Of a stretch of DNA of 64,000 nt, positions 1 to 63,433 are shown piece by piece. Made by a program: the position numbers and the translations under genes. The notes below the pieces were generated by a model. The model worked only from the letters and a program-made list of their open reading frames with translations. It searched no databases and had not been told where the DNA came from. The stretch comes from Bugula neritina (taxonomy: Eukaryota > Animalia > Bryozoa): assembly GCA_964035545.1 (NCBI GenBank), contig OZ037770.1, forward strand, positions 3,070,662 to 3,134,661. Direction: 5' to 3'. The number at the start of each line of letters is the position of its first letter. Position 1 is the first letter of the stretch.

Positions 1-27
1 ATATATATACATATATGTATACATATA

Positions 28-74
<47 letters not shown>

Positions 75-100
75 ATATATATAAATATATATATATATAA
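1..100. repeat. (TA)n microsatellite
   Basis: Direct reading; lies in an intron of the caspase gene. Confidence 0.95.
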
Positions 101-138
101 TGTTGAACGAACGAATAGTAAGTAAGTAGGTAGCTTAC

Positions 139-368
139 AGACTGTCAGGAAGCGTGGAATAAAATATATAGCAGTCTTCCGGAACCTTCACCGCAGGGAA
201 AGGATGCCGTTGCCACTCTGCAGCAAAGCTTTTTTGATCGAGTTCTCTCCGCACTGGATTTATTTCTGATGGCCATTCTATGAATGGTGTAGAAGAAGTC
301 CATGCTGCATGGGTTCTATTTGAGCGCCCTCTACCAAGCTTTCCTCGGCAAAATGATAGCCATAACAT
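139..368 (-). CDS. Caspase domain exon 3 (catalytic Cys SFCRG, inter-subunit linker, start of small subunit)
   Basis: PK|MLWLSFCRG corresponds to PKlf.iQACRG; EDCYIFYSTLP corresponds to the small-subunit start D.l.aYST.PG. Acceptor TTACAG|, donor |GTAAGC. Confidence 0.9.
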
Positions 369-3300
369 CTGTAACAGAAACTGGCAATTAGCTATCTCAG
401 CAGAGCTATGGCTGTTTCAAATTCCTATGTAATTCACAAGTCTTTTAATACCTTAGGAATGTGCTTCAGATTGGAGCTACACAGAGCGTCAACTACTTCT
501 TGAACTGTAAAGACAGAGCCATCATTTCCATATATACCTCCAGAGTTGGTATCACCATGGGACATTATAGCCAAGGCCACAATGGATCCATGGTTAGAGG
601 ATTCTGAAAAGACTTTTATTGTTCTGATCATTTCTTCTGCTGTGCTCAAATCACAGGCCTCTTCCACCTTAAAAACGAAAATTTCAAAACACAACGGCAT
701 TAGTACATGGATGTCAGAGTTCAATGTCGCCGAAAAGGAGTTACAGGGCAGTGTTGTTAGAAAGGTGAGAAAGAAATAAAAAATTATCACGTTTTTTGTT
801 CCAATCTCCTGAGAAACACACTAAATGTAATGCTTATACTGGTACCTGCAAGCCAAGTTGCAAGCCTAAAGATAACTTAGCGTAATCGAGTTCCGCTTCA
901 CCGCCTTCTCTACCTTGCAGATTACAAACAATAAGAGCCCTCCCGTTAGCATTATCTAAGCTTGTTGTTGTTTCTTTAAAAGATGAATCATGGTATCGTC
1001 TACCCAGTGTAGAGCTTACTTCTATCCGTTTCACATTTTCGTCACCTCGAAGTGCCATAAAAAGACCATCTATGCTATCAACTGGATCTTCTGAGATTTG
1101 TAACGGTCTAAATGAGAGCCAATACATTAACTTGTAAAGCATGTGGTAAACAAGAGCTGGTCAAATTTTCTTTTAAAAACTCACTAATACGAATATAAGA
1201 ACTAAACTCTAGAGCATATTAAAGAATCTATGCCAGCGGCTGTTCAACCCCAGCTTACAGTTATGTGGCTCTCAAAGGCATAAAACTACAATTATTTTTC
1301 ACAGTATATATGAATTAAAGTGAAAAAAAAACTTTTTCAATGTTTTATTTATACATATGTTACAAAACCTGCGTTAACTATTGGAATTTTATTGTGCAAT
1401 GATTCATAGAAATTTGGAATAAAATGATTTAAAAAATAATGTTAGGGCTCCCAGCACAGGCTAAAGGTTACAATGTGGCTACCCCTATGAAATATTCCTT
1501 TCTGGTGGCCCTTGGTCTGAAAAGGTTGAACACCTCTGATCTAAGCTATGACGGTCACCCAAAAAACCCCCAATTGTATAGGTTTAAATTAGTTATGCTA
1601 TGGTGCCCGAGAAAGCCTTGAAGCTACATATGCTTGACTCGAAGTAAGTTTTAAAGACGAACCTAAACTATTCCTACTAAGGCACTTACAGTGATCACGG
1701 TTATTATTGAAAAGAAGTTTTTGACGTCATAAGTTCATAGTTTTAGTCTTTTAACCAACCTTTTCTCAACGCTATTGTAGATAGGGCTAACAATCAAGTA
1801 GTCAGGTGCAGGTGGGGTTAAATGTATTTGACTGTCTTCAGTTGATTGTAACACAATGACCTAATAATGTACAGAAAATAGACAGACACCATTGAACATT
1901 TTCCTGTTTGAGTATCACATTAAAGAGATTCAGATAATTACAAGACATAGATGTATAATCAAAGGTTTAAATGAAAAAAAATATTCAAAACAATACAATA
2001 TACATTATATTCAACAAATGCTATCTGCAAGTACTTCAATTTCTAACATACACCTTACCTAATAGACAATTTTAAAGCTTGTATAAATGAGTGGGCTCTT
2101 AATAAAAAAAACATTGATACTAATGTAGATATTTGATGACACTACCTTAGGCTGGCCATGGAATCTTGGGTCATTCATGAGGTGAATTTGCTCTTGTATT
2201 TCCTTTTGATCTTTTTTGCCGTAATCGCAATCATAGTTTAACCAAACCATTGAATGACTATCAATTAGCAATGATTGAGAAAGCAATGATGTAACCAGGG
2301 CTTGAGATAGAACAAACATTGGTTCTAGCAATGAGTATTGGTTTAGTGCATAGTGTAGCACCTTCAAAATGTCGGTAGAAAATTGAACTCTAAAGTCTAA
2401 ATTACACGAAAAGAAACCATCAGCCTCCATTTTGTACTCTCTGTCCATCTCAAAGTAAGTGCCACCGTAAATTTGATCGACTGCTGCCGGACTGCACAAA
2501 ACCGAAGTTGTGTAGTACTGTGTGGAAAACATTTGAGTGCTTAAAATTGTTCTACAACTTACGTTTTTTATATTTTTCTGGTCGATAGCTTTTTTTCGTA
2601 GTGGTAAAGGAAGAGAAAGTATGAAGTTTGAGAATACTTTGGCGTTGAATTTTGATACAGCATAGCTTATTGGCGTATTTCTGTATATGTCTGGTGATGT
2701 TAGATCAGTAACCTTTGGCACTATTCTACAAATAATTGCCTCAAGAATTTGGCTCATGAAAGGAGAAAGACACGCTAAATGGTAAATATTTTGTTTATAG
2801 CAATTCTTCATTTGTGCCAAATTAGCTAGGATGTCCCCATCGTAAGGAAGGTCCTCTATGCAATCTAGCATATCTTCAAACAGACTAAGATTTCCATGCT
2901 TTATAGCGTGTGTAAGGCCAGTAAATCCGTTTTTATCTTCAATTGTTAAAAGTTCCATAGGATCTTCAGCAAGATCAATGAGTGATCTAGCAATATCACC
3001 ATTGTTGGAATAATGCAAAGCTGTTTTTCCAAAAGAATCTCTCTGTAGCAAGATGCTACAATTCTCCTCTTGAAGATTTTCTAAAATGATTTTGATGATT
3101 TGTGGATCAGATGCATAATGAAGTGCAGTTCGGCCCTTTTCATCACAAAGAGTGCTGATTGATTTCCAGTCGTCGCATTGATCAAAAATTTCTTGAACCA
3201 ATTCAACTTTACCTTGTCTAGCTGCAATATGAAGCACCGTTTGTCCGTCATTGTTTGTTTCCTGCAGTATTTTATTCTTTTCACTTTCATTACTTATTGC

Positions 3301-6300
3301 ATTTAAAATTTCACGGCATACAGCTGATGTTGATGCATGATGCAATGCTGTCATACAATTTGTGTCTTTATCAAATAAAGAATCGTATGGTAGCACAGTG
3401 AGTATATATGATACCATCTCATGGCAGCCATTGCGCGATGCTATGTGCAAGGAATTCATATGTACATCTCGAGTGTACATTTGTAAATAGTTGGCTCTTG
3501 AATTTATGTCAATGGTATTCAAAAGAGTTTCAGCAAGCTGTACATTGCCAACATAATGCAATGGTACTTTGCCATTTTGATCTTGCTTGCTCAGCAGCAA
3601 ATGGTAGTCAACTGTTTCACCCAGTATTCGATCTACAAGGTTGATTTGCTTTTCAATGGCTTGGTGGAAAAAGCTTTTTTCATCATCTGAGCTGGATGTA
3701 AGCACCACACTGTTTTTTAAGCTAATTTTACTAGCATCAGCAAGTAAATGAAGCAGTGGTTTATGCCTCATTTTCAATGTCTGATTTAGAACTTTTACAT
3801 TAGCCAGTCTAAATGTTAATAAGGCATTTAAATTTCTGCGATTTAATTTTTTAACACCAGCCAAAGCCAAATCAACATTTACTGTTTTGTTCTCAGAGGT
3901 TCTGAGAATATAACTTGCTAATAAGCTATTGTTAATGTAAGTCAATTTGATACTGCCTCTAACTCTTTCAAATAGCAATGACTCTTTGCTCATCAAATTA
4001 ACATAGAGAAAGTTTGAAAAATGCGGCCTAATCATAACTGTTGGATATATCTCGTCCTTATGGTCATTGAAGCTATTGGCTTCAGCGAATTTCAAGAGAC
4101 TGGTAGTTGTTTTTATTAAAGCGATTTCATGTGCTGACAAAAGAGTATCCAACAAAAATTCTACAACATCAAATCTTTCTTGGATAGCTGCTGCCATCAC
4201 CATATCAAATTCGTTCTTTTCAACTCCTGAAAGTATATAATTCGCTTTGTCTTCCTGAGGTATGATACTTAAAATACAACTGATAACTTCAAGATATTTG
4301 GCATAATGGAAAGGCAGTTTGTTACTGGTATCCTTGTGCCACAACAAAGCTTCAAGACTCATATTGAATGATAAATAAAACGAAATCAGTTCTTTCGAGT
4401 TCTGCAAACACGCATGATGCAAAACATTTCTTTTGTTGGTATCAACTAAACGTAGTACCTTTTCTTGTTTGGGAGCTTCTATTTTCGCAATTAAATGTTT
4501 TGCTGCTTCAACATCTCTAATCAAATGGAGTGCTGTCCTACCATTGTTATCTAGGAGTTCAATAAAGGCTTCATCGGGCAAGCAATCTAAATAATATTTC
4601 AACACATCTGTATTGCTATTGAATGCAGCAGTATGTAATGGCGTGTGATTCTTAGATCTGTCAGCAAAGTTTATTATGCTACTAATACCGTGCTTTGAAT
4701 ATTTAATCAAATATTTTGCAACATTTGTGTTTGCTGCATAATGAAGTGGTATTCGGTCATACTTATCTGTTTTCTCAGCAATATCAGTGTAAGAGAAGTT
4801 ATTAACCATGTGTTCTACAACATCAGCAAATCCTCCCTTTGATGCCATGTGTAAAGCAGTTTGATGATTAATTTCTTCAGTTGCACACAGCAGCTCAACA
4901 GCATCAGTAGCGGCATTCAGCAACAGTGCCGATGCACGTCTTGTTTGAGCATAATGCAAAGCAGTACGTCCATTTTTATCTTTTAATGAAGAAAATGAAC
5001 CTTTATAATGTTCTTCAATGTTATCAAGAAGACATCGAACCACATCTGTATGATCATGTATGACTGCTGCATGTAATGGTGTTTGTCCATGCTCTGTGTC
5101 AGCCTTCATCATCATATCCGATTGTCCTTTGGCGATAAGCATAAGCAAAATTTCTTTGTTATAGGCATAATGAAAAACACTGCGGCCTTTTTCATCATTT
5201 TGGGAAATAATTTGATCAGCCCATGGTATCTCCAGAAAAATTCGCACAATATCGGTTCTGCCTTCCTTTAATGCCCTGTGAAATGTTGATAATTTTGTTT
5301 CATCATTTCCTTCATCTAATACAATTTGGTTTTGAATTGGTTCAAAACTATTTAGTAGCACCTTTACTATTTGGTCATTTTGAGCATAATTTAATGGAAC
5401 CTTATCATAAATGTCTCGCTTAAAAAGTAGAGCATCACTCGTAAGAATACTACAGATATACTTGACCACTTCGTGTCTATTTTGCCCAGCAGCTATGTGC
5501 AGCACAGTTTGATTTTTGTCATCAGTAGCGGAAAGATAATTTTCTACATGATGTTTATCAATACTATTTACGAGACATTCTGCAACAACCTTAGATCTTG
5601 CTTCATGCAATGGGGTTTTCCGACTTTTACCTTTAATGAAAGCTAGCGAAAAGTTTGTCATGCAACAATTTTCACATACCTTTGTTCGACTGGGTTTTCT
5701 AGGCTGTATATCTGAGAACGTTTGCCCACTGGTGCTGATATCTCTTTGAAAATCTGTATACAAGCCTATATTTGCATTTTGGTACAAACAGATGTTTTCG
5801 CTTTCATCAATGCCAATTGCTTCATAACTGAGATTATTACAGTTGCAGGGCGCCATAAAAGCAGTGATGTCATTAATTGTTTTCACATGAATAAGGCTGC
5901 AAAAAGTCTCTACCAGATCTAAGTTGTCTTTTTGAGCTGCTAAATGCAGTGCCGTGTTGCCATCAGCATCTCCTGCAGTTAAAAACTTTCTCTGATACTT
6001 GGTTTCTATTGCTGAAAGTAACTGTTTAGCTACATTAGCTGTAGAAGCATTGTGTAAAGCAGTTCTACCTTGGCTATCTCTCTGAAGAAAAAATTTGATA
6101 TTGGATGATGGTATTTTTGACAGAATTAAACTTAGCAGATCGTGGTGGTCCAAGTTTACAGCTAAGTGAAGAATGGTGGCCCCATTATAGCTGCAAAGCT
6201 CTAAATCATCAACAAAATTATGCAGCTGTGCTGGGGGTTGAAAATCATCAGACATTCTTCCAAGAAAGTACTCAACAAGTTTCATTTTGTCAGTTCTCAC

Positions 6301-9300
6301 TATAAAATGCAGCGCAGTTTCTTGATTATTATCTTGCATTGTTAACAATTTTCTGCTTTCGCCAAATTCTAGTTGCTTGAGAAAAAAATGCATTGTAGAT
6401 TCTTTTTCTACATAAAACAAAGCATTTCGACCATATTTATCTCTAGATGTTAGCAACTCAGTCACAGAAACATTGCATTCGCACAAGGATCTGGCTGCAT
6501 CATCTTTGCCATTTACAAGAGTGGTATGCAGGGCAGTCATCTGATTTACATCTTGTTCAAAAATGAAAAATGAAAAGTTTGCTGTAGATACAGCATTGGT
6601 AAGAATCTGCACCATGTCCTTGTTCATAGCATAATGAAGTGCTGTTCTCCTCTTATTGTCTTTCTGTAAAAACAGAGAATCATCAGGCAAAAACATATTG
6701 CATATGTATCTAGCGACATCAAACCTATCATCCTGAGAAGCCAGATGCAAAGCAGTTTGTCCAAGAATATCTTTATTCTTCAAATAGTTCATAACCTCTC
6801 CTTCTTTTATGCTGCTGATTATTGCACGGGCTGCTCTTTCATTACAGGCTCTATGGAGGACAGATTCACCAAACTCGTTGGGTTCATTAAAATGATTGGC
6901 ATCATACTTTGTTCTTAGCAAGTACTCGAGTACTTCTACTCTACCTTGTTCTGATGCATCATGTAACACAGAGCTGTTAGTGTTATCATTCTTGTATTCA
7001 AAATCTATAGCACTAGCAGCATCAACAAGAATCTTTGCTGTTTCAGCATTCAAAGCAACATGAAGCGGTGATTTTCCATATTCATTATATGTAAAAAGCT
7101 GCAATTTAAATTGTGTTATTGACAACAAAAACTGAAGAATAGCTGTTCTGCCACCTGTTGCCATATCATGCACTACTGAATTGCCATCCTTATCAGATTT
7201 AAAGGTGAAAAGTTCCTTTTCTGCTGCTTTTACAATTATTCGAACTATGGGAAGGGAGTTTGCTTTGTGCAAGATAGATTTGCCCAACTCATTTTTTGAA
7301 CTGATGAGCTTCAACTTGCCAAGACCTTTAAAAGTTTCACAGAGATTATGCAATAAGAGCACACAATTTTCTGTAGCAGCTTTGTGTATCACTTGAATAA
7401 GCAAACTAGTATTGGTAAACTTAGTTGGCCAAATATAGCGGTATAGTTTTGACATTTGAAGTAAAGTATCGATTACCTGCAGATTACAGCTCTCAAGAGC
7501 ATAATCAATTGGTAGTCGGTTATATTTGTCAATAATATAAGCTGGGTTCTCAGGAAGATCTGAAACACGTTGGCACACATGCCTAACGAGCTCAAACAAA
7601 TTTGCTTTTGCAAAAATATGAAGAGGTGTTCTCTTTTGATTGTCCAACATACAGAACAAAGTATTGACCTGTGAAAAGTTTTCTCTAGCATACTTTATAA
7701 AAAGTTTAATAACTGAAGCCTCCTCACAGTAGTGCAGTGGAGTTTTACCATACATGTCTTTAGCAACAAGCAGATTTGAGCAGACGTGATAACTTGTTAC
7801 CTTGATTTGTTCAGCATCCTGTTCTTCTGCTATATCAAATTTGAAATCTGTAGCTTTCAAAATACATTCGGCCACTTTACTGTTGGCATTTGCATAATGT
7901 AGAGCATTTTTGTTGAAGATGTCAGTTTTTAATAGCAATTCAGATTGAGTTACCGGGAATCTATTAGTTAAAACCTGTACGACTCCTTCCCGAGAATGTA
8001 TTATAGCTGTATGTAAAGCTGTTCGCATTTTGTTGTCAACAATTAAAACACATTCTGGGGCAAGTGTTTGCATAAAATCGAGAATAGCTTTCAAGACCTC
8101 ACCATTTGTTGCATGATGAAGTGGTGTTTGGCCATTATCGTCTTGTCGAAACAAAGCATTTTTGTATGATACAGCTAACTCAGAAAACAGCTGCACTACA
8201 TCACATCTCCCATTTTTAGCAGCTTCATGTAAGGAATTGACGTCCAAATTTTCAAAAGGCAAGAATTTTTCCAACAAGTAACAGTCTATGCTGCTATTAG
8301 TAGCATAACAAAGAGCTGTTTTGTCATAGACATCTAATTGCAAAAGAAACTGGACATCTTTCGAGCTGTTAGATATTAGACTGCATATGTATGCAACAAC
8401 TTCCGTTCTTCCCATTGCTGATGCCAAGTGCAAAGCTGTAGCCCCAAAACTATCTAGTGCCTGAGACAAATATTCAATTTTATTTGCAGGGTTAATTGCA
8501 TTTAAAATGATTTGTGTCATTTGTTTTGATTCTGCCAAATGAATAGGCAGTCTTCCTTGTGAGTTCTTTTGGCTCAAAAGATTTTTGTATGTTTGGCTAC
8601 TACAAATTTGTTCCACCAAATCAACCTGATTCTTGCCAACTGCATTCAAAAATAAGTTTCCCAATGAACTTTTAGCGCTATTAAACCAAGAAAGCTCAGT
8701 GCAATCCGATGATATGGCTTTTAAGACAGAGATAAGAATGCTTTCATTTTCACTTTTGATTGCATAGTCTAATACAGAAAGACCTGAACTATCTTCTAAG
8801 CCCCAACAGGTTTTGCATTCTGATAGGCAAGTGCAAAGAAAAGCTGTTACTAACTCCAGATTCTGTGAAATCACTGAATGAAGTACAATTATTTTATTTT
8901 TGTCAGGTAATAAAATCAACTTTTTGAAAAGATTTGTTTGCACCACAGCAAGACCATTATCTTCTGTTTGCAGCAAATGAGGGTTGGCAAAACGCCCATT
9001 GCCAGCTTTAGTTGGAATCTGCATATTTAATGAAAAATTTGCCGCTTGTCTAGCAGATGAAATATAAAATCTTGCATTAACTTGTTCACTCAAAATTTGT
9101 AGAAAATCAATTGTTTTGTCGCTTGAGTTACTAATATAGTGCAATGCTGTTTTACCTGCTGCATCTTGCTTAGACATCAGTAAAAAATTGTCAATTTTCA
9201 ACGAACACAAATATGTTGCTACATCATACCGATTGTTCATAATTGCAAAATGCATTGCTGTTTGATCATTTTTATCGAGTTTAAACAAAAATGGTTCTAA

Positions 9301-11091
9301 TGTGTTTTCACCAACACACTGAATAACTTTATGAGCAATATCGGAGTTTGCTGCATAATGCAAAAGAGTACGCCCTAAGTCATCTTCAGAAAAAAATATG
9401 CTTCTATCACTAATGGTTGTGGTGGCATATATGAGTATATCTACAATTTCAGCATGACAAGCACAATGCCAGACAGTTTGCCCTTTATTGTTCTTCTGGT
9501 AAATCAGCTCTTTGCTCAGCAGATCATTTTCTAATAGACATTGCAAGATGTCAGTTCGGCCATCTTCTGCAACCAAATGAAGCAAAGTACTTTTCTGAAA
9601 GTTCACAGCTTTTAAAAGTGTTTCAGTTATAGACTTGCCAACTATGTTCAACGTGGTCTCTACAATCTGCCTATTTTTAGCTAGGTGTAATACGGTATTG
9701 CCAGCCTGATCTTGTTGAAACAACAAAGCTTTATTTAACGATGTTACACTACACAGCATCTGAAAGACATCTACATTCCCATTATCAGAAGCAATATGTA
9801 AAGCTGTTTTTCCTGTGATGTCCTTTCCTCTTAACAACTCTACCATGTTGTCAATACTTATCAATGAGAGTTGCTCACATTCAACCTCAGAAGATTGTTC
9901 TGAGCCCGGCATCTGCATCATAAGAGCACAGAAGTATTGGAGGACGTCTATTAGCTCATCATTCATAGCAACCCTGTGAAATATGCTACTGCCTGAATGA
10001 TCGAGTAGGTGAAATATTTTGCCTAACTCTGCTAACTCTATTACTTCGGCAAGAATTCTTGCAACATCAAAACTTTTCACGTAATGAAAAACTGATCTTC
10101 CTAAATGGTCCACCTGCAGTAAAGACTCAATACCCCAGTTTGCAATACTATATTCATCTTCCTTCACTAAAAACTGGTAGCCTGGAAACGTTTGTTTGCT
10201 ACAAACACTAACTAAGTACTCCACCAACAACAAAATGTCGCTTTTGACTGCATCGTGTATAAAAGTTATGTCCTCTCCGCATGTGCTAAAGACATTCATC
10301 ATTTTTAGATACTTAGCAACTTCTTCCCGATCTTCATCCTCTGCAAATTCAGCTGCATTTTGTCCATCTTCATCCACTAGGGTCAAACACATGCTATCGG
10401 TATTCTCTAAAATAATTTGAACAGTCTCAACGTTTAAAGCATAATGCAGTGGGGTCCGGCCTTTCAAATCTGGCTTTAGTAAGCACTCTCTTGGTCCTAC
10501 CAGCTCATAATCACCAGATTTACAATCATTTAAATTGAGACTAAACAGGTATTCCAAAAGGTCAGTATATCCAGATTTTGCAGCGTAGTGGGCAACTGTC
10601 ATTCCTTTAATATCGTGTGCACAAACAAGTTTCTGATGATTTGAAGTAAAAGCATATGATAAAATCACTTTTGCCATTGTCGAGGTGATGCAATAATGAA
10701 ATGCTGTTCGACCAGACCTATCACGAGACATTAACCATCTATCACTTTTATCACTAGCATTTGTCACTATAAGTCTGTCACAAAGAAACTCAACTCGCTT
10801 CACATCTTGAGTAAGCACAGCATCATGCATTACATTTGTATCTTGACATTTTTCAAACCCAGCTGGCACATTCTTCTCAGAAGGCTGTTCTGCAGGAATA
10901 CAAATCTCATATACATGTACTTCTTGTGCGTGATCGCTCATTAAATCTTCGTAGATGTATTCATCGTTGAGACTCGTGTTGGTTAACCTTGAAGTGATAC
11001 TTGGTTTGGCGTAGATCTCTGAGTCAGAAGCTGTATTTTGTTGAGCAGCTACATCTATCAAAATCTCCCCTTTTTGATAGTTTTGTGCCAT
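139..11091 (-). CDS. Giant ankyrin-repeat/caspase fusion protein (multi-exon, 3' end outside window), >3250 aa
   Basis: Phase-consistent GT-AG model: exons 11091-2146 (phase 0), 1860-1760 (phase 2), 1107-846 (phase 0), 667-452 (phase 0), 368-139 (phase 2, donor GTAAGC). The spliced frame has no stop. The N-terminal part is ankyrin repeats; the C-terminal part has caspase motifs RALIVCN, GREGG, IMSHG, SFCRG, DCYIFYSTLP. Confidence 0.8.
452..667 (-). CDS. Caspase domain exon 2 (catalytic His, MSHG)
   Basis: VALAIMSHGD...IYGNDG...LCSSNLKHIPK is a typical caspase segment. 216 nt, phase 0/0, AG/GT ends. Confidence 0.9.
846..1107 (-). CDS. Caspase domain exon 1 (start of large subunit)
   Basis: GRALIVCNLQGREGGEAELDYAKL matches the caspase first beta strand and the conserved R-x-G motif. 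Acceptor TTTAG|, donor |GTACCA. Confidence 0.85.
1234..1538 (+). mobile_element. Non-autonomous hAT (Buster/Charlie-type) MITE, intronic
   Basis: TIRs CAGCGGCTGTTCAACC / GGTTGAACACCTCTG; 8-bp TSD ATCTATGC vs ATCTAAGC (7/8, central TA). Related internal sequence at ~34430-34680 (+) and ~60400-60610 (-). Confidence 0.8.
1760..1860 (-). CDS. Linker exon of the ankyrin-caspase gene (VIVLQSTEDSQIHLTPPAPDYLIVSPIYNSVEK)
   Basis: Acceptor ATTATTAG| and donor |GTTGGT. Open frame; phase 0 in and phase 2 out exactly bridge the giant exon and the 1107 exon. Too short for the ORF track. Confidence 0.7.
2146..11091 (-). CDS. Single ~8.9 kb exon encoding a very long ankyrin-repeat array (roughly 60-70 repeats by eye)
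   Basis: Uninterrupted 3016-codon ORF with recurring G-x-T-[AP]-L-H-x-A motifs (GRTPLHYA, GKTALHIA, GQTALHLA...). Acceptor TTTTTAG just before 11136; first ATG at 11091. Confidence 0.95.
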
Positions 11092-12285
11092 ACTGGAGCT
11101 TGTCACCACTATCTTGTTCAGTATTATAATTATACTCTAAAAAGTATTTCACAAACAGTCTTTTACATGTGCTTTAAAAATTTAAAGCCTGCAAATTCAA
11201 CATAGCTATAGATGCAAAAAAAGTAGCCAGAGTCGATTTTTTATTAAGCTGTTTACTGCTATAAACTACAGCAACTATAGCAGTCAAAAGCTACACATTT
11301 ATACTAATATTATGCTGTAGTAGTGGCTGAGAAAACTAGTCAAGATTACTTAAATCCACCCGCTGGTATCAATCGTTCTATAAGCGGATCATTGACAAGC
11401 CTAATCACAAAAATGCTTTACGTGTCTTGCTTTACTTTTGGCTACACAAAATGACTCACTTTTGCCGTCTTCAGCTGTTGAAGCGTTTATTTGTTTAACG
11501 TCTGCCGGATTTCAGCAATTAAATCACAGAAAGCTTGAAAACCCCAGTTTGAATGTTCAAGGTTCAAAAAACTTAAACATTAAATTTGCTTCAGAATTGC
11601 AGAGTAAAGTTTAATTCAATATATACATGGTTTACACCTGTTTGCAAATTAAGAAAAACTATATAATAACATAATAAGGAATAAAGTAATAAAATTTAGT
11701 CATCTTTCATCAAATATTGCTTAAAAAGCATAAAAAACTCAAATATTAGGGAAAATAATTTACTAAGCCTATAGGTAGGTTAGCTTTACATCTAAAATTT
11801 GTCTTAAACTAACAATAGCTAAATTATATAAATATTGTTGGGATCAAGTCATAATAATCGTAATTATTTACTATAATAAGATATAGTGTAAAGGTGCCAT
11901 ATATGATAATCATTAGGAATTACTAGAGTCTGTATAGGAGTAGTGTTAAACTTAGAGTCACACACTCACTAACAAATACAGCACAAACATACTACACATG
12001 CACATAAGTGCATGATGCATATATGTGCACGTGTATTATATGTCCTTATACATATACGCATGTACATACTACATACAATTTGTATATGTGTATATATGCA
12101 TATGCATTTTCGTATAGATAAATTCCTATGGGATTGCTTATATCATAGATGGCTCGTGCACATAAAATAGTTATTTAAGCAAAAGAGGACAAATAAACAA
12201 AATCAAAAATATTTCAACTCAGAAGTTGTCCTCTCTGGGGGGGGGGGGGTGCTGTTTACTTACATTTAGATGCAGGCTGGTGGTG

Positions 12286-29388: not shown

Positions 29389-31952
29389 TCATGCATTGAC
29401 ACGATTTTTGCACTTGAATGTGCTCATACCGTAATAGTCACAGTAGCTATTGTTTGCAGCGACATCTACACACTGATCTCTACTGAAATGCCTCCCGATA
29501 TCATGCCAAACGTTATTTGGTCTCATGTGAGCTAAGCTACAGAACTTGCAGAATTCAGATGGATCTAAAAATAAGAAACATATATATGAAACACAGGCTT
29601 CTACTAAACTGTGGTATAATGTCAAGGTCAACATCTAGATTAACCAGCTGACTAAGATATATAAATAATGTATTGATAAACTCAGATATAGAAATACTAT
29701 ATCTATATAAAGAAATATACACATAGTATATTATTTAAGAGCTTATGTGCAGAAGTATTATAATTATCATTTATATTGGCTGAGTTTTTGATAACAAGTG
29801 CAAATTTAACAAAGAAGTTTTTCTCTCACAATTATGTCAATGTCTTTTGCCTAATCAAAATGAATTGGGAAAACTTAAAAGCTTAAAGGATTGCTCTATC
29901 TTGTCTAATAAATGGCCATTTAGGTCAAACACACATAATATTGTGTTTTTCTAAGCATGCATTGACAAAAATCATTTGACCAAAGGTAGAAAAAGTTAGT
30001 TGAAGTTGAGGGTGTAGATTGGTAACAGCCAAAACGCCGATTTTGAAATGAGCTGGGAAATGTGACGTAACAGCGCCAGCATTCCTGCTGGTCACGTGAC
30101 TATACAAATGAATAACTATAGAAATATGACTGTGAGATGTGATCTTTCAGCTCGTAATTTGTATATTTATAGAAGTGCAAATGTGAATTATCTCAATCTA
30201 TAGTTTTTTGAAATTTTAAATAACATGTATGTGATAACATTAGGCCATATTTTGCTTGTAAACATTAGAAAAAAGCATTGCAAAAACATGCATTCTTTAG
30301 GATGAATGCCTGCGATCGATCTAAACTAGGTCAGCTAGATTGTGCAATATTATGGGCACACCAAAGCTGACCTATATAGCGCACTGTATAACTGCTTGGG
30401 CGTTATTGGTTGATGTTGTGCTCAGCAACCTCGAATACTAGCGTTATAGTTAGCACGTGCAGCATAGTTACTGGCGTTCACACGTCACGTATTAGGCTAT
30501 TCTTTTTCATGGCTGAAAATTTTACCTCCCTCAAAATTGGAATTTTGAAAAGCTGTTTTCTAGGCACATATCCCTTTGCAAAGTCACAATTGTTTGCATA
30601 CACATTAGATTTTAGTTCATAATTATAATGTGATTGTAATAAACTAAGATTGAGCAATCCTTTAAGCTATCAAGAAGTCAGTGTGTTCTATTTTTCAGAT
30701 TAAATTGCCACCTCCCTCTGCGTAGAAGTTTGAGTAAGCCAACATCAAAACCTAACGTAAATATTTAACTAAGAACTTTAGATACAGCAACCAGAGGTCA
30801 AATGTTAAGTCATGGCTACAAGAAATATAGAACTGCATTTACTTCTAAACGGGAAATTTGAAGTTATCTCATACCATAAAGCTAATGATAGCAAATGACT
30901 TTCTACATACCTTCTCTATAAAGTTTAAAACTATTTCTCCAGCTTAGATAGTAGTTAAACGTTTCCTTGTGCCTTGTTACATAGTGCAGATGTTCAGATA
31001 AATGTTTCGGTGACGTAAAGTTCTTAACGTGTATATAACTGTTTGGAGGAGCGATACGTTCATACTCTTCCATGCTCAGACCTCCCATTACGATAGGTAT
31101 GACCAGGTCTGGTCCTTCTAGAATTTTCCAGAACTTTTCTGTAATGTAATCTTCACAAAGGTTGTTTTCAAAGGAGAGGTAGAAATGAAAACTGGAGAGT
31201 GGAGGTTGTTCACTGAACGGAAGCAAAGAGATGAGGTGAGGTTTGATAGAATCTATAGCCCTTCGGCATCGGAGTTTAATAGTGAAAATAGACAGATGTA
31301 CCCAGTGAGACAGTTCTAAGGCGTATTCCAGTCTCGCGCTACGGACAAGGTTGCTACAGTGTGAAACAAACCAGACAACCTTTGGCTTGAGATCCATGGT
31401 TGTAAGTCTCTCATTGTCAAAACTTCTAATCGTTTTACCTAATGTATCGGGAAAAATTTGTGAGGCCCACTTGTTAGGCCTGTTTGAGTCCCGTTTGTAC
31501 GTGAATGAGTAGTTAAAGTACCCGTTCCATTCAGCGAGATCCACTTTAGCAAAAGCTTGTGGCTCTGCAGCATTGAGTAGCCAAAGCTGGTCAGTTGACT
31601 TGTTTGGGCGGATAACTGGAAGTCGTGTAAATTGAAATACGGCAAGGTCAGCGTTGGGGTCAAGGTTAGTAGCATTGTTTATTGTAAACCTACACTCGTA
31701 CATTCCCATACAGGTGAGATGTTCGGATGTCGGCATTTCAAACCATCGGGGATTTAAAATTTCAATATGCTGAATCTTCTTGTGGGCCGGTGAGTATGAT
31801 CGTATGCTGTGAGTGTTGTCTGCACTTGGCAGGTACATGATGCTTCTGTTGTTGACGTTAATGTAAAACAATATACATACCACTGTGAAGGCAGCAAGAG
31901 AAGTCAATCCAAAGTTGGATTTGTAGTAGATGTTTAGCACTTTTATCAACAT
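29389..31952 (-). CDS. Alpha-(1,3/1,4)-fucosyltransferase, glycosyltransferase family 10 (type II membrane protein), 2 coding exons
   Basis: Exon 31952-30911 has an N-terminal TM segment, VVWFVSHC and the GT10 motif FHFYLSFENNLCEDYITEKFW. Phase-1 splice G|GTATGT...TTTTTAG|AT to exon 29564-29389 (DPSEFCKFCSLAH...VWHDIGRHFSRDQC) supplies the typical C-terminal cysteines. Confidence 0.92.
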
Positions 31953-34913
31953 CTTTGAGCAGCGGCGGCCAAATCTCACCCTACTCTTGCTCTTGATTCA
32001 CTTTGACTCGCTGATCAATACTAAACTACAACATGAGAACTGCTGCTATAAGTACTTTAGCATAATATCATATAAGTTAGAGAGGCTTTTGTTAAGAATG
32101 CATGATTTGACAGCTTAGGTTCCAATCTGCTGTTATTCCAATAGGTTGGGCAGTGTCTTTTTCCCAGTAATGAATTCTATAGTCTGATTCTTTCTACAAA
32201 CTAACCTTTTAATATTGATTGGTGTTTTCATTCAATAAAGCTCAGAAATGAATGGCCAATACACTCATGTACATTCACACAGGTATTATATATGTGTGTG
32301 CCAATTCGTGTACCATAAATACATATAGAGAATATGAGAAAGCCTGTTTTTGATAATGAAGTTTTACAACAATTTCTGCAAGTATATAATTTTTAATAAT
32401 ACACAAAACTAAATTTCTTAACAAAAATCAAAAGTAATTTGACGAAAAATAAGAAAGCAAAACTCTGCTACATCATTTGCTTAAAAACAGTTTCTATGGT
32501 GACAGAATCCAAACAACAGCAGCTCAAAAACAGTTGATTGCTATAAAATTCTGGATAGCAAATTTTTTTTTACTAAAATATATTATAGTTGAAATAAATT
32601 TTTGTCATTTGATATTTAAATGCAAAAATATTGGTTTGACACTTAATTTATTCAATGAACATGCAGTTACTATTAACAATATCTTGCTGAATTCACCTGA
32701 AGAATGGCAGTTCACAGTTCGGTATTAAACTGTGCTAGTAGTTTTTTCAAATTGTACTATAAAATAATGTAAGCATTGCGCTTTTCTTTCTTCAGGAAAA
32801 CTTGTGTTTTCTAATTGGTTTGTACGACTTCCATGAACTGCATTCACTATAAAATTATTAGATGTTTTGATATATTTTTTCTTTTTTTAGATCAGGCCAA
32901 AAAGCAAAGCTGTTGATGGTTTAATAATGCAGAGAGAAATAGCATGGCAACAGCTTGTATTGTTGGCATGAAGACTTTGAGGTTGTCTGTATTTTGCTGA
33001 TTCAGCTTTTTTGGTGTTTTTTTAAAATGATTACTCATCCATATAGCTGACTGGACAAGTCTGCATGGTAGCTACAGTATATGCACAAATACACAAACTA
33101 ATAATAACCTTTGTTGTTATATGCAAACTAGAAAAGAGTGAGGTTGAAGCCCCATCCTAAAGAACTTCTCTAACCTGCCCCACCATGCAAGACCTACTCT
33201 GAACCAAAAAGAGCTGATTAGTTCTAAAGAAGACATTCCATAATTTTCTTTATCATATCAAGCTGTCTGCTCAGAGTTCATTAGTATGACACTTGATGTC
33301 ATCAACTTCAAGCTGTTTTATTCATACCTGCTTGTTGGCATGTATATTTTTGTTGTAAACTAAATAACTATTGGTGAATAAATTCAAATATGTAGGTATT
33401 TTTATAATTTTCTGATATTTCCCATAATGATTTGCTTAAAATAATTAATTATGATTTTTGTGTCCCTGTATAATTACAGAAAATAGTCTATTCCTGATGG
33501 GTTTTGTGAATTTTATTTTGTAATCTATAAACAGTACAGCTTCTAACTTTTCAAATAAAGTACAGACTCTAATACCTATAGTATCATATGATATTCATAT
33601 TATAAATCCAATTGCGTGCAAGTATTATAGCCGGTCTTGTTCCACCTGTATATTCCATACATGTTTGGTTTTGTCAGAAGTAAGAAACTTAGACCCATTC
33701 TTCAGTCAATTTTCTTACAAATATTTAAAACCAGCAGATAAAAATACCCCTAAATAAGAAACTTTTATATACAATTTGAACCGAATTTACTTTTTGGCTT
33801 ACTTTGCTGGTGTGTAATAAATAAAGTATTATATGACTAATATACTATTCTACATATTATAATGGAACGACTCATTCATTGACTGAACAGCGCTGTAGGT
33901 AACCTGCTGCAATCACTGAGGGTTATTAACTTTATTATTCAATTTAACTCTTGAAATTTAAGATCTATAGACAGTATGAAGCAATGAACTAAGTAGAGAT
34001 GGTCACCAAGGAGAAATAAATAAACAGTAGCACTGTTGAAAAGATGCTATAATACAGCGTATAAATGCAAACAATGCTATCAACAAGCTAATACTAGAGT
34101 GAGTGATTGAGCTAGCCAGTGGTCATTCCGGAAGCTGGAATATTGGCTACGAATGGAGAGCAAGTCTAAGGCTATGAACTGTAGTCCATGACTTTCAATG
34201 TTGCATTAATTCCTTTTCTACGCATAACTTTACACTTTTACACCTGAGTTATATATTTGTGTATAATCTATGATAGTAAATTATTTAATGGTTTGTGTTT
34301 ATCTCTCTACTCTCCACACATAAGTTTAACGTATTATCGTTAATTTACAACAGGCTATGGCTGTAATGATTAAGCTAGTAGGTACTACTACTAGTCAGCA
34401 ATCTTTATAATAGGTGCAAACATCTATACCTCCTGGGGGGCCCAGCCTACATTCATGTGGCTCTCAAAGGCAAAAAAAGTATGTATATATGAATTTGAGT
34501 GAGAAAACCATCTTTTAAATGTCTCATATTTATATATGCTAAAACATGCAGCCTGCATTAACTGTTGGGACTTTATTGTGTAAGGATTTATTATAAGAGT
34601 TTGGAATAAAATAATTTAAAAATTATTGGTGCTGTGGGCCCCCAGCTCAAAGTAAAGTTCACACTGTGCCCCCTTGATCACCACCTTCATATCCTTTTTA
34701 GAGGCACCCACTCTTGGGCTATGTTCTCAGTTACTACTAAACTGTTCATGGAAAGACAATTTCCCACACCACAATGTAGCTATAACAGGAGTTGCATTCT
34801 CTGCTAATTGTAAATGACTTATGATCCCAAGCTTTCACACTACCAAGTTATATGATGGCTTATTTTCAAATTTATATGTATGTTACTAACATATTTTGGC
34901 AGTTGTGTGCACA

Positions 34914-53500: not shown

Positions 53501-56500
53501 TCAAACATAGGATGATACATACCGAAAGATCACAGGTCTATCACATACAATTAGATGAGATCAATATCCAATCATAATTGGGAGAAAACGATTAAATAAC
53601 CAAGAGTATTCCATTAATGAGATGAAAACTCCTAATATATTGTTCAGATAAAAAGTGTAATGTTGTATTATTGTTACTAATAAATGATTTCGCTTTGACA
53701 CTAGCAGCATCTTGTATTGAAGAAAGATGTCTTTCAATTTTCAATGAAAGCTTCCTTAGTTAAATAAAGTGATTAACGTAAATTTTGGATCTTTGTTTTC
53801 AACTTCTGTCACAAAACTATTGCACAGGTAATGTTGGTGATAAACCACACAGGTAAACCTGTACGTTATAAGAATACAGAAATAGTTCGCTAGAAATTAG
53901 AATTCCACCAAATCACGGTATTTCCTGTTTCAACGCACCTTGAGCGGGTTCGGAGTTGGCGCCTTTATAGGCGTTCGGACCTTCGCAGATTTTGCCGGGG
54001 ACGTGTTCTCGTTCTCCGGAGGTATGATAATGTCCATCTCGGACTCAACTCTACAATTTACGTAACAATCATAGCGAAACCGTGCACCTAAAAGATTATC
54101 ATTCAACACTTGTGCTTGCATACAGTCTTGCACTTTACATTGATATAGTCTGGCAAACCGACCCAACTGCATGGTCAATTTCTGGTTTGCTGTTTGGACC
54201 AAGAAACACCTAGTGAAATGGTTGTTGTTGACATGTAGGAAGTCATTTGATTGGTGCTCAGATGCAAAGAACGAGCTGATTGGTGTTCAACTGCAAGGAG
54301 CCAGCTGATTGGCTGCCGTACCTTTGCATGGAAGAATGTTGCTCTCTACTGGTGGATCTCAAGAAATCTCCTTCGCTCTCCATGGCAGGGGTTCTCGGCA
54401 AATCCGGCAAACCATCTCCATCTCCAGGACTACAGGGGAAGACAACTCATTAGAGTGACACTTAGAAGAGCAGAAATATGAGGATATGATGCCGTGACAC
54501 CACAATTTATCTTGTTTTTAGAACATTTTAAACTACTCGAAAAATAATGTCAGCTATCCCAACAAGTTCATTTGTCAAATAAACAGAACACGCAGAAGCA
54601 TTAAGTTAATTTAGAAACTACCCTATTAATTGTGTTATCCATGGATGTTAAACTTTTCTCACAATGAGCTTTATTTAAAAAACTTAAAAATCAACTTAAG
54701 TAATATGTTCAAGGTAGGTGCAGCATCAATGAAGCTGGGAGTATATCGTATGAATAGAAAAGGCTGTACAAGAGTTATGTTATCCTGAAAACTTCAACCC
54801 ACCCCCACACTAAAGTTCACCAAGAGAACCACAGAATCGGAGCTATTGAAATGTTACATAACCAATCTACTTGCTGACAGCATATCAAACGCTGTCACAG
54901 CAAAAGAGCAGCAGCAAATCATTTCCTGTGTAAATATGCTGACCTCTACACTATCTCATACACTGACCTCTACATTATCTTATACACTGACCTCTACAAT
55001 ATCTTATACACTGACCTCTACACTATCTCATACACTGACCTCTACGCTATCTTATACACTGACATCTACACTACCTTTACCTCTACATCAAACCAGTTAA
55101 CTCAGAAAAATAGTTAAGCGTTTACTTTTATTTAGAAATCAAAGTAAGTTTTCACACATTTTTGAATACAACCAAATATCCATAGTTGAGTGAAACTTAC
55201 AGATTCATAAAGTTAGACTCGGTGGACCTCCTGGAAAGAGCTGCGGAGTGAGGGACGCTCTCCATACGCCCCGTCAAAGGACCTGTTCTCACTACAAAAA
55301 GTGTGACTATGAAGTTATTGCTCAATGTTGTAACAAATCTGTGAGATTTCAATTTAACAAACAACACCAATAGCAGGGGAGACAATCCAAAAACAACACA
55401 CCACACATAAGTCTAGCTAACACTGACACAGCATAATTGGTTGGCAAATCTACAGAAAATTGAAAGAAGGTTTGAAGAAAAATCTCTTTTAGCATCTTTT
55501 CAATAAAAAGTTGAATTTAAACAATTTATATTAATTTAAATTAAATTTATCATTAAACTCATTTCTCTGTGGTATTCAATTCGCATGTTTTGAAACTAGA
55601 ACTAAAATTCAAGGTAAATGCTTTTAAATTTTTCTTTCTGAATTAAAAAGAAAAATAATATGCTACACCTAACAGTAAGTATTTGAGAAGTCAAAAGTAA
55701 TTTAAGACATTTAGTTAAAAAGACTCAGAAAAAAATTAACACCAAACATAACTGAAGGATGAGAAACTGTTTCAGTTGATGAAGTACAGTAAATGTATTT
55801 TAACAATTACACGATAAGTAATGATTTGCTTTTATCAGGAATAAGTCAAGGTTTTTTTTGACAAGCTCCATGTATAAGCGACTGGGTTAAAAAGTAAACG
55901 TACCAAATAGTTTAGCAACATTAAAAGAAATAGCAATATTTACTGATTGAAAAATAACCCTCTCCCTAATCAGTAATAATTTGAAAACCCCCTTGAAGAC
56001 TCATATCAAAGTCGCAAAGAGAAACCCTCCATTTATGATTTCCTATACTAAAAACAATCAGAGAAGGATTTCAGTTGAGATTAGGGCAAGAGGGACTTAT
56101 GAGATGTTAGCAGGCAGATAGCTGAACTTAGATAAAGCTGATGTGAGTCAGAGTGATCTACTCACAAACAACAACTCCAGAGTTAGAAAGTGTTCACACA
56201 CAAAAGACCAATATGTTACGGTGAGTCAATAAGAAAATGTTAGAACATTACTCACTCACAAATGACCACCATGCCAAAATATGAGACCAGCATGTTACAA
56301 TGAATCACTCACAAAAGACCACCATGTTAGAATATGAGTCACTCGAAAAAGCCCGCCATGTTTGAGTGAATCATTAAGAACAGACTACCATGTTAGAAGG
56401 TGAGACACTAAGGGAAAAGCACAAATGTATAAAGTTTGTCACTCAAAAGACCACCATGTTAGAATATGAGTCACTCATAGGAGACCACCATGTTAGAATA

Positions 56501-62500: not shown

Positions 62501-63433
62501 TTGAAGTAAAAATTAATACTTGAACAGTTGTAATAAATTGAAGTTGTTGGTTTTTGTAAAATCAATTAATTCTAAGGTGGCCAGAAAAATTTTGGTTTTT
62601 AGACAAGCTAACCCTTAGTAAATTAGAGGCAGCAATGTTAGTGCTGCCTAGAAGTGAAGGACAAAACCTGCTACCCACCTGATATCTCTCTGAATGAATT
62701 ATCAAAGGCTTCTCTCTCGGGATTATCTGAGATTTGTCAAAAAACATATCTTGATGCCGTCTCAGCACCGGCACCATCTTTAACAGTGTAGAAGACCTGC
62801 CGGACACAAGAGTTGAAATGAGCAAAATCGAATAAAATGAACTGGAACCAATACAGCATGCAGGGAATTTTTCTGGACAAGTAAAACCTGAATTGATATA
62901 TGATATTCATAATGACACACCAAACTTTGAACTTAAATTCTTTCATTGTAAAATGAATATATAAATTACGGATTCTTTTCTCAACAGTTAGAAAACACTA
63001 CAACTGAAAAATAATTCAAAATTAATAATTTAATTGTCTAAACATTTTTACAATTGCCAAATAAAAGTTCTCCTAACATTCCTATTGTATGACTAATTCT
63101 ATTTGAACCTGGATGTTGCCTACAGTTTAACCTAGATACTTTGGAAAACTGAACCTAAAAAGTTATTATTTAGTTCTCTAATAAATCTTTCATTAGTAAA
63201 TACAACATCAAGAAAAAATATTTTCAATTAAAATAAATAATCAACTGAAAAATTATAATAAAAACACATACTCAATCTGCTTAGTTGGTTACTGAAAATT
63301 GCATAGTAAATAAAATCTTAGCTATTATTTTATTTGTGTGAACAACTTACTTGAAATATTGTGGCTGGAAGGGCAGGGGGTCAAAAGAGGCTGACACATA
63401 GGCTAGTTGATTGACTGGTTGGGATTGAGACAT
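50505..63433 (-). CDS. EF-hand domain-containing protein, 14 exons, ~519 aa from the first in-window ATG (may extend 5')
   Basis: Phase-consistent exons: 63433-63351, 62796-62679, 62060-62029, 61357-61217, 58489-58341, 58256-58230, 56755-56621, 55282-55201, 54429-54322, 54050-53939, 52518-52363, 51274-51113, 50923-50783, 50618-50505. EF loops FQKLDTDDDGHLMYQQ and FQQVDRTSKGKITLDS. Confidence 0.85.
51340..51750. repeat. 25-bp minisatellite (TGACATGTGACAGGTCTGCTAATAA), ~16 copies, intronic
   Basis: Direct reading. Confidence 0.95.
52558..53342. repeat. 21-bp minisatellite (TATACACTATACACAGTAGAG), intronic
   Basis: Direct reading; generates the LLCIVYT / VYSTVYS ORFs. Confidence 0.97.
54939..55087. 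repeat. 24-bp minisatellite (CTGACCTCTACACTATCTCATACA)
   Basis: Direct reading. Confidence 0.9.
56200..56545. repeat. Degenerate ~30-bp tandem repeat (GACCACCATGTTAGAATATGAGTCACTCA)
   Basis: Direct reading. Confidence 0.85.
57779..57964. repeat. TAG/CTA-rich palindromic low-complexity repeat (TAGTAACTAGTAGC)n
   Basis: Direct reading. Confidence 0.85.
58506..58950. repeat. AT-rich minisatellite (TTACTATTATATTACAACTAT)
   Basis: Direct reading; intronic. Confidence 0.9.

Follow-up and report, generated by a model that had tools for sequence, protein, structure and literature searches.

The window analysed, a 64,000-nucleotide stretch of contig OZ037770.1 from the Bugula neritina assembly GCA_964035545.1, holds all but the last exon of one spliced minus-strand gene in which about 60 ankyrin repeats are joined to a caspase (Table 1). 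Introns within the window have GT donors, AG acceptors, and compatible phases (0, 2, 0, and 0 from exon A to exon E). The initial annotation was thus correct about the phase-0 donor at 2146, the 101-nt exon, and the phase-compatible GT-AG junctions, and its chain of joints (2146>1860>1107>667>368) also held. Its placement of the caspase on three exons did not: because 139 borders a donor and exon F lies outside the window, the caspase spans four exons. A stop at 137-139 was considered as the end of the gene and rejected, the position being a splice donor. RNA contigs pass from exon E into exon F, so that the loose end at 139 leads to the start of exon F. At the other end of the gene, a possible splice acceptor (11137-11138) ahead of the start codon is conserved in the other assembly.

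TABLE 1 Features of the ankyrin-caspase gene (window coordinates unless noted)
Feature	Position	Strand	Remarks
Exon A	11091-2146	-	2,982 codons, stop-free; phase-0 donor directly after P-K
Start codon (11091) and acidic N-terminal tail	10855..11091	-	~79 residues; three Tyr in acidic context; without known domain
Ankyrin array	2574..10854	-	Residues 80 to ~2840; Pfam Ank_2 E 1.2e-156
Non-ankyrin insert	~3664-4134	-	~150 residues (~2335-2480); interrupts array
Family-specific helical cap and connector	2275..2775	-	Last degenerate repeats and conserved K-V-x-x-Y-x-L-N-x-Y helix (alignment A5)
Putative pseudo-caspase, first part	2146..2274	-	Strand, helix, up to G-x-P-K; end of exon A
Exon B	1860-1760	-	101 nt; ends in phase 2
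Putative pseudo-caspase in exon B	1760..1860	-	Strand with Q but without catalytic Cys, very short inter-subunit loop, P-D-Y-L strand
Exon C	1107-846	-	
Putative pseudo-caspase, end (exon C)	near 1013	-	Last helix and last strand (S-T-L-G-R-R-Y, near 1013), then ~22-residue tether
Caspase start (exon C)	941; 911-909	-	Strand 1 at 941; first Asp-binding Arg at 911-909
Exon D	667-452	-	Phase-0 donor directly after P-K
Caspase core (exon D)	559-557	-	Catalytic His (S-H-G); Pfam Peptidase_C14 E 9e-6, above cut-off
Exon E	368-139	-	Phase-2 donor at 138-137
Caspase in exon E	350-348	-	Catalytic Cys (S-F-C-R-G); structured inter-subunit segment, first small-subunit strand
Last intron	Starts within 1..138	-	668 nt; separates exon E from exon F
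Exon F	G000:C6 3070131-3069771 (L041:9132-8772)	-	Beyond window; 119 codons including second Asp-binding Arg, two helices, last strand, and stop

The fusion is real: this is a single expressed gene encoding a chain of 3,371 aa. Introns of 83, 178, 652, and 285 nt (E/D, D/C, C/B, and B/A, respectively) were seen as joints in contigs of X1, X2, and X5 (probable RNA runs from three studies), the check that the initial annotation had proposed, and in no contig of X15, a DNA-like run. One X1 contig covers exons A, B, and C, and an X2 contig links exon B to about 1.4 kb of ankyrin-repeat sequence; no single read or contig runs the length of the 10-kb message, and the comparison with contigs covered the part of the gene below position 6000. 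The six-exon model recurs in an independent assembly (91-99% identity exon by exon), and the B. neritina database protein P0001 has an identical six-exon layout with the same start. The RNA joints from three studies and the independent assembly speak against a pair of separate genes and against a chimeric assembly, and both readings were rejected. P0001 was used wherever the whole chain was needed, and our own spliced model was searched per exon.

We detected 58 repeats of 32-40 residues each, mostly of alternating long and short types, besides several degenerate ones; gaps in the array probably hold several more. Searches of Pfam and the ESM Atlas with the insert gave no match, and ESM Atlas searches otherwise returned generic ankyrin rows or nothing. 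Exon A has no internal DNA-level repeats and thus no sign of recent repeat copying; a recent expansion within the gene was considered and not seen. Pfam revealed no NTPase domain in exon A or P0001 2780-3367. No CARD or DED match lies at the locus; genome-wide profile scans for both match elsewhere only, where the separate CARD and DED matches adjoin other caspases. The 69 open stretches upstream of the gene gave no relevant Pfam match, although short 5' exons could escape such a search. Upstream CARD/DED exons acting as a hidden prodomain were found neither in these stretches nor in the genome-wide scans. All three lines agree with the initial annotation, which recognised no death fold or NTPase, and both profile matches that it had suggested (Ank_2 and Peptidase_C14) were obtained.

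The motifs RALIVCN, R-x-G, MSHG, PK, SFCRG, and DCYIFYST are present in the order originally reported. The catalytic dyad and both Asp-binding arginines of an animal caspase are intact. Metazoan caspases cleave after Asp and act as dimers, and their basic Asp pocket consists of two Arg and one Gln. His, Cys, and both Arg are retained in all family members read, and the two Asp-pocket Arg align in P0050 as they do in further members. The canonical Gln ahead of the Cys motif is replaced by Ser, the small subunit carries a long insert, no conserved Asp occurs in the inter-subunit segment, and the last strand bears bulky polar residues. P0050 scored above the Pfam cut-off, whereas the whole-domain Pfam score of P0001 was weak. 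Core identity with CARD/DED initiator caspases reached 32%. In structure comparisons, the active domain matched CED-3 (VIA Z 15.9) and caspase-9 (Z 14.8), whereas SAVED-CHAT reached only a VIA Z of 9.5; Foldseek assigned the caspase fold with an E value of 7e-7. The last helix and strand of the model are ill-defined (exon F pLDDT of <50; pTM of 0.52). Circular permutation, in which an upstream small-subunit-like part completes the active large subunit, was also considered; in the model, that place is taken by the strand and helix that lie downstream, and permuted caspase-2 aligns over the core only, which makes permutation improbable.

Between the repeats and the caspase lies a domain of ~110 residues that is absent from the initial annotation and lacks the catalytic residues in its sequence. 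It has no Pfam match, and its best sequence match in the PDB has an E value of about 0.4. Its model (pLDDT 81) has the order strand-helix-strand-strand-helix-strand. Caspases or MALT1 occupied 49 of the best 50 Foldseek rows (best E, 0.038; TM, 0.50-0.53); in the ESM Atlas, TM values stayed under 0.5. VIA placed 104 of 121 residues on caspase-6 111-285 (Z 6.8, rmsd 3.4) and gave Z values of 5.1-5.2 for c-FLIP-L 305-475, although values below 8 may reflect merely a common arrangement, and a wide VIA search yielded Z 5.2, level with unrelated DegV proteins (5.4). Alignment by hhalign scored 35.8, versus a maximum of 16.8 among 100 column shuffles, a test made after the fact because the caspase idea arose from inspection by eye. 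Gene structure points the same way. A phase-0 intron directly follows P-K in the dead and active copies alike in every family member read, whereas the exon is continuous across this site in the other caspases read from the genome; a second matching intron (phase 2) follows the next strand in both copies. Dead-domain pieces occur at 19 of the 20 family loci. These tests are each weak singly and mutually consistent. The domain is probably a dead, shortened copy with the fold of the C-terminal caspase half, the one that forms the dimer, and very probably arose as a duplicate of the family's own caspase exons of which only the interface-strand half of the fold was kept. An ankyrin array does stand in place of CARD/DED, as initially proposed, but the repeats do not run straight into the protease: a probable dead half-caspase intervenes.

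The gene belongs to a family of 20 loci marked by the conserved cap, among which it is the longest; the other 19 are known by coordinates from the genome scan. A caspase exon D follows within 1.6-6.9 kb at all 20 loci, 8 copies are clustered (C8, 7.3-7.6 Mb), and the array ranges from under 500 to 3,025 codons. In a tree of B. neritina caspase exons only (71 columns), the family formed one group (93/88); the caspase set of the genome comprises at least 177 exon-level matches. The giant array appears to be old, because a co-linear giant relative exists in another sample (27-35% identity over about 2,900 residues); the dead half is present in other samples too. Word-index searches with the C-terminal 590 residues or the caspase alone returned no match, although the existence of P0050 shows that their sensitivity is limited. 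Homologue searches matched no flatworm sequences and no named relatives of the cap outside Bugula.

Between the two assemblies, dN/dS was 0.44 across the gene, indicating overall purifying selection, and 0.21 over exons B-F. Within exon A, constraint is strongest in the cap region (1 non-synonymous versus 9 synonymous differences at residues 2801-2930). The N-terminal third is 79-88% identical, compared with 94-99% for the protease exons, and the same two assemblies show no excess change at hairpin and first-helix positions of the repeats. Clear positive selection was looked for and not seen: the top interval (residues 501-750), with 36 non-synonymous against 7 synonymous differences, lies near the 79:21 site ratio.

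In textbooks, the initiator caspases of animals are monomers that CARD or DED platforms must assemble, and we know of no characterised initiator caspase that is activated other than by dimerisation in trans. Caspases require a partner across the interface strand to order the active site, and c-FLIP-L stands in as the caspase-8 partner in trans. Our best reading, to which we assign a probability of about 0.45, is that the ankyrin solenoid, cap, dead half-caspase, tether, and caspase constitute a self-contained gated protease. Because of the need for a partner across the interface strand, the tethered dead half would most likely dock on the active domain in cis, replacing the second protomer; no predicted model shows this docking (exon F, with the interface strand, has a pLDDT of <50). 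A pair docked in cis would require no CARD/DED platform. The solenoid and cap may keep the pair off, or carry it to a partner, and a protein bound to the repeats would release Asp-directed cleavage, with inter-subunit processing not obligatory. The mode of action of such a protein would be that of separase or TPR-CHAT, reached independently from a true animal caspase. Within the colony, it would most likely act in regulated cell death or in defence signalling, the least supported step. Defence gene families are often expanded, clustered, and variable. We put forward only tentatively the fullest version, i.e., a bryozoan caspase family with its own dead dimer partner and a variable ankyrin solenoid as switch, reinventing the separase/TPR-CHAT design as one-component defence or cell-death sensors that dispense with death-fold adaptors and trans dimerisation.

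Classical induced proximity through a new adaptor would use the same parts differently: the array would recruit at least two molecules to a platform or ligand, the active domains would dimerise in trans, and the dead half would be a movable inhibitory cap or a spacer. This reading is the closest to the view of the initial annotation. The trans habit of characterised initiators and an active domain complete to its last strand both fit it, and Horkan et al. (PMC11463336) have suggested that flatworm ANK caspases act as initiators. However, a mere spacer would have no need of the interface half, yet this is the very part of the fold that the dead domain has kept, and the domain persists at 19 of the 20 loci as well as in other samples; the bulky polar last strand would also, by analogy with caspase-9, disfavour simple self-pairing. 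We consider trans dimerisation of this kind unlikely.

A dedicated processing protease rather than a sensor, active or nearly so alone and using a fixed-length scaffold to select or position a particular endogenous substrate or structure (development, polypide turnover, or cytoskeleton), would suit the co-linear giant relative, the lack of recent repeat copying, the dN/dS of 0.44, the few hairpin and first-helix changes, and the presence of contigs in several studies' probable RNA runs. It is nevertheless improbable, given the far more variable N-terminal third and an expanded, clustered family whose array lengths vary in a defence-like manner. The middle domain might instead be an unrelated small alpha/beta domain in what is simply a very long ANK caspase, as the want of a significant single match and Z values under 8 would allow; sequence motifs, fold ranking, the two matching intron positions, and the repeated interchange of middle- and active-domain pieces by MAFFT favour a caspase and make this quite improbable. 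That the whole protein is a scaffold that cuts barely or not at all, its caspase-like part binding other caspases, is very improbable: S-F-C-R-G for Q-A-C-x-G, the long insert, and the weak P0001 score would fit, but the catalytic and Asp-binding residues kept in all members read, the constraint on exons B-F, and the P0050 score oppose it.

If the gated-protease reading is right, the tethered dead half-copy is a natural test of whether an interface partner alone switches a caspase on, in a compact scaffold (about 430 residues minus the repeats) suited to expression and assay. The gene also exemplifies the rewiring of a large caspase set, in a little-studied animal phylum, with repeat arrays in place of death folds. 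If the ankyrin fusion alone holds, the gene adds a large new member to a type already published but uncharacterised.

Flatworm ANK caspases form a clade that is sister to the DED caspases. Such proteins, with an ankyrin prodomain ahead of a metazoan caspase as in the B. neritina gene, have been published for parasitic flatworms (Schistosoma and kin) and the annelid Alitta virens (Horkan et al. 2024, PMC11463336, citing Lee et al. 2014). The architecture thus has the narrow known range that the initial annotation supposed but is not unprecedented. Convergence, which those authors argue for the annelid protein, also likely explains the likeness between the Bugula and flatworm proteins. Their study sampled no bryozoan, and its accessible part mentions neither a second, dead domain nor a giant array nor an expansion of the family. 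In the openly readable literature, subscription journals being largely outside coverage, we found no account of a repeat, pseudo-caspase, and caspase layout in animal caspases, nor any paper describing bryozoan caspases or an animal caspase with dead and active domains in tandem.

With CARD/DED initiators (caspase-2, -8, and -9, CED-3, and Dronc), the Bugula protein shares a long prodomain, the His/Cys dyad, and two Asp-binding Arg; it differs in lacking a death fold and a conserved inter-subunit Asp, in having S-F-C-R-G for Q-A-C-x-G, and in its own intron pattern. NLR-like or Roco one-chain receptors have an NTPase switch, which is absent by Pfam here. In the caspase-8:c-FLIP-L pair (PDB 3h11 and 3h13), a dead caspase domain is the dimer partner, a part that the Bugula middle domain could also play; c-FLIP is separate, full-length, and DED-bearing, whereas the Bugula partner is truncated and tethered in cis. 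In separase and TPR-CHAT (Csx29/Craspase), a single chain leads from a helical-repeat solenoid through a pseudo-caspase domain to an active domain of the caspase fold, and the solenoid gates activity (PMC10028731). The domain order is that of the Bugula protein, whose pseudo-domain is probable only and, unlike theirs, a half-fold. They pair TPR/HEAT-type repeats with the CHAT/separase (C50) branch, whereas the Bugula protein pairs ankyrins with a canonical animal caspase, closest by VIA to CED-3, caspase-9, and caspase-2 rather than CHAT. The likeness is one of analogy, not of membership.

The minus-strand open frame of 3,025 codons, which ends at 2059 and has its first ATG at 11091, belongs to a six-exon gene. 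Exons A to E and their splice sites, as read in the initial annotation, were borne out: all introns are GT-AG, and the junction phases read from the sequence are 0, 2, 0, and 0. Contigs of four runs were placed on positions 125 to 6000 of the window. All four introns were skipped in contigs of X1, X2, and X5, runs from three studies whose RNA nature is a tool's guess; contigs of X15, a DNA-like run, skipped none and covered the introns as in DNA. A single X1 contig covers exons A, B, and C, and a single X2 contig extends from exon B deep into the ankyrin repeats, as far as position 3530. Contigs also run beyond 139 into the opening bases of another exon, the sixth (F), which lies 668 nt beyond exon E, outside the window. 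The complete coding sequence (10,116 nt) encodes 3,371 residues. The database protein EB796_001182 (P0001; 3,367 aa), from another B. neritina assembly, has an identical six-exon structure (exon identities of 91, 94, 94, 99, 96, and 97% for A to F). Homology searches were performed exon by exon, with P0001 used wherever the whole chain was required.

Coordinates of features. Positions are those of the window (C6 3070662-3134661) unless prefixed by a contig (C) or by a locus stretch (L041, just outside the window; L046 and L047, with relatives).
Feature	Position	Strand	Remark
Exon A	11091-2146	-	GT-AG
Exon B	1860-1760	-	GT-AG
Exon C	1107-846	-	GT-AG
Exon D	667-452	-	GT-AG
Exon E	368-139	-	GT-AG
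Acidic N-terminal tail	10855-11091	-	three Tyr in acidic context
Non-ankyrin insert	3664-4134	-	~150 residues, inside array
Dispersed repeat	1109-1405		intron B-C
Hairpin	L041:9380-9585		last intron
Fucosyltransferase	30903-31979	-	single exon
Open stretch	53933-54286	-	114-118 codons
Open stretch	56508-56849	-	114-118 codons
Open stretch	62565-62906	-	114-118 codons
Exon D-like fragment	C6:3256370-3256483	-	185 kb from the gene
Ankyrin frame near caspase exons	C9:9320001-9322967	+	example
Ankyrin frame near caspase exons	C2:30520913-30535784	+	example
Ankyrin frame near caspase exons	C2:32918381-32921111	-	example
Ankyrin frame near caspase exons	C6:3451752-3455166	-	example
Cys near Gln, dead domain	L046:7476-7584		relative
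Cys near Gln, dead domain	L047:12061-12170		relative

The array and the protease are joined in one spliced gene, as the initial annotation had proposed, with a domain of ~110 residues between them (P0001 2940-3050) that it had missed. Caspase motifs recur there in order: G-x-P-K, a hydrophobic strand and Gln without Cys, a P-D-Y-L strand, a helix, and S-T-L-G-R-R-Y. Modeled by itself, the domain was predicted confidently (pLDDT 81), and 49 of 50 Foldseek rows were caspases or MALT1 (best E, 0.038). A second structural comparison placed 104 of 121 residues on caspase-6 111-285 (Z, 6.8; rmsd, 3.4), and profile comparison with the family's caspases scored 35.8 (at most 16.8 in 100 shuffles). In an unbiased wide structure search, a caspase (Z, 5.2) and c-FLIP-L (5.1) tied with unrelated DegV proteins. 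Independently of the fold, in every family member read, the middle and active domains share two intron sites, one in phase 0 right after P-K and one in phase 2 past the following strand; the P-K site has no intron in the other caspases read from the genome. The simplest account, to which we assign a probability of about 85%, is that the middle domain is a duplicate of the family's own caspase exons that has lost strands 1 and 2 together with the catalytic residues; each test is weak individually, and the figure rests on all of them together. On this reading, the domain retains the half-sheet terminating in the dimer-interface strand. In some relatives, a Cys lies 1 to 2 residues after the Gln, possibly a vestige of the catalytic motif.

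The active domain starts in exon C; exons D and E also carry it, as first described, and exon F completes it. Its predicted model matched CED-3 (Z, 15.9) and caspase-9 (Z, 14.8), with the exon F part poorly modeled. The domain has the catalytic His (559) and Cys (350) and, in register, both Asp-binding Arg, with Ser at the position of the usual Gln. Its inter-subunit segment, sequence-conserved and helical in part, lacks a conserved Asp. No CARD, DED, or NTPase was detected within the gene or upstream, in agreement with the first reading.

Caspase active sites become ordered through pairing across the last strand, and in initiator caspases CARD/DED platforms bring this about; caspase-8 can be activated by pairing with the dead c-FLIP-L. 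We tentatively favor a scheme in which the half-domain, on a tether of ~22 residues, would dock onto the active domain within one chain, the pair being gated by the cap (the conserved helical segment after the repeats) and the solenoid. Ordinary dimerization in trans, with the half-domain as an inhibitor or spacer, appears rather doubtful. A processing protease with a dedicated role on a fixed scaffold is unlikely. A non-caspase origin of the middle domain is still less probable, and a protein without catalysis is highly improbable.

Searching the 216-Mb genome with the cap profile gave a paralogue count of 20 loci (open frames of 491 to 3,025 codons, the present gene being the longest), eight of them clustered at C8 7.3-7.6 Mb; the other 19 are putative copies defined by coordinates. 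Close matches to exon D lie 1.6 to 6.9 kb downstream on the same strand at all 20, dead-domain pieces occur at 19, and ankyrin matches in the cap's frame occur at no fewer than 15 of these loci besides the present gene. EB796_011352 (P0050; 1,175 aa) is a second annotated member. Shorter members have an additional intron upstream of the dead domain that this gene lacks. In a tree of the genome's caspases, the family core exons form one group (93/88; 71 columns). A scan of 1.84 billion database representatives yielded 41 matches, those traced being Bugula records, marine biofilm metagenomes, and sequencing runs. Two that were tested share only 27% and 35% identity with their top match in this genome and are therefore probably from other species. 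One, the giant relative on L045, is co-linear with our gene across ~2,900 residues and has two frame breaks, one coinciding with an assembly gap.

Ankyrin repeats run through exon A from residue 80 to ~2840; 58 were detectable, at a false-call rate of 0.15 per shuffled copy. Long and short types mostly alternate, and gaps probably hide several more. The insert had no Pfam or Atlas match and recurs, at low identity, at the equivalent place in the L045 relative. The acidic tail, whose tyrosines we take to resemble tyrosine-kinase sites, differs between assemblies and was not seen among the relatives read. Between assemblies, exon A has a dS of 0.10 and a dN of 0.046 (ratio, 0.44), exons B to F have a ratio of 0.21, and the cap (2801-2930) is nearly invariant (0.03). 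Identity is 79 to 88% over residues 1-1000, the hairpin and first helix carry fewer differences than do the second helix and the loops, and no internal DNA repeats were found in exon A. The gene is thus maintained, with a looser outer end, and the comparison gives no clear sign of diversifying selection.

The last intron is 668 nt here versus ~220 nt in the other assembly; by eye, it holds a long near-perfect hairpin between TA runs, a probable polymorphic miniature transposon. The intron B-C repeat has at least 39 other copies (76 to 79% identity) and is very deep in X15. The nearest recognizable gene upstream encodes a fucosyltransferase (glycosyltransferase family 10; E, 6.5e-36); three open stretches resemble exons of another gene and had no Pfam match. 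The fragment on C6 is 78% identical to part of exon D; neither the cap nor the dead domain is matched in its vicinity, and it is perhaps a broken duplicate. Genome-wide, Peptidase_C14 gave at least 177 exon-level matches (clusters at C1 32.8-35.5 Mb and C6 2.5-6.3 Mb), CARD four, and DED three. Further ankyrin frames of 577 to 1,009 codons precede same-strand caspase exons by 2 to 4 kb; they did not match the family's cap or dead domain and possibly represent another class of ankyrin caspases, distinct from this one. On C4 at 12.29-13.08 Mb, near-identical two-exon ankyrin matches are densely clustered in tandem on both strands, as far as seen unconnected with the gene.

The ankyrin-caspase combination is a published type: one survey describes ankyrin-prodomain caspases from parasitic flatworms and one annelid, with bryozoans absent from its sampling (PMC11463336). 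Csx29 and separase share the layout of solenoid, pseudo-caspase, and caspase (PMC10028731), but belong to another branch of the fold and carry repeats other than ankyrins. The present protein is outside both separase/TPR-CHAT and the CARD/DED initiators; it appears to be a true caspase whose mode of action is perhaps like that of separase/TPR-CHAT.
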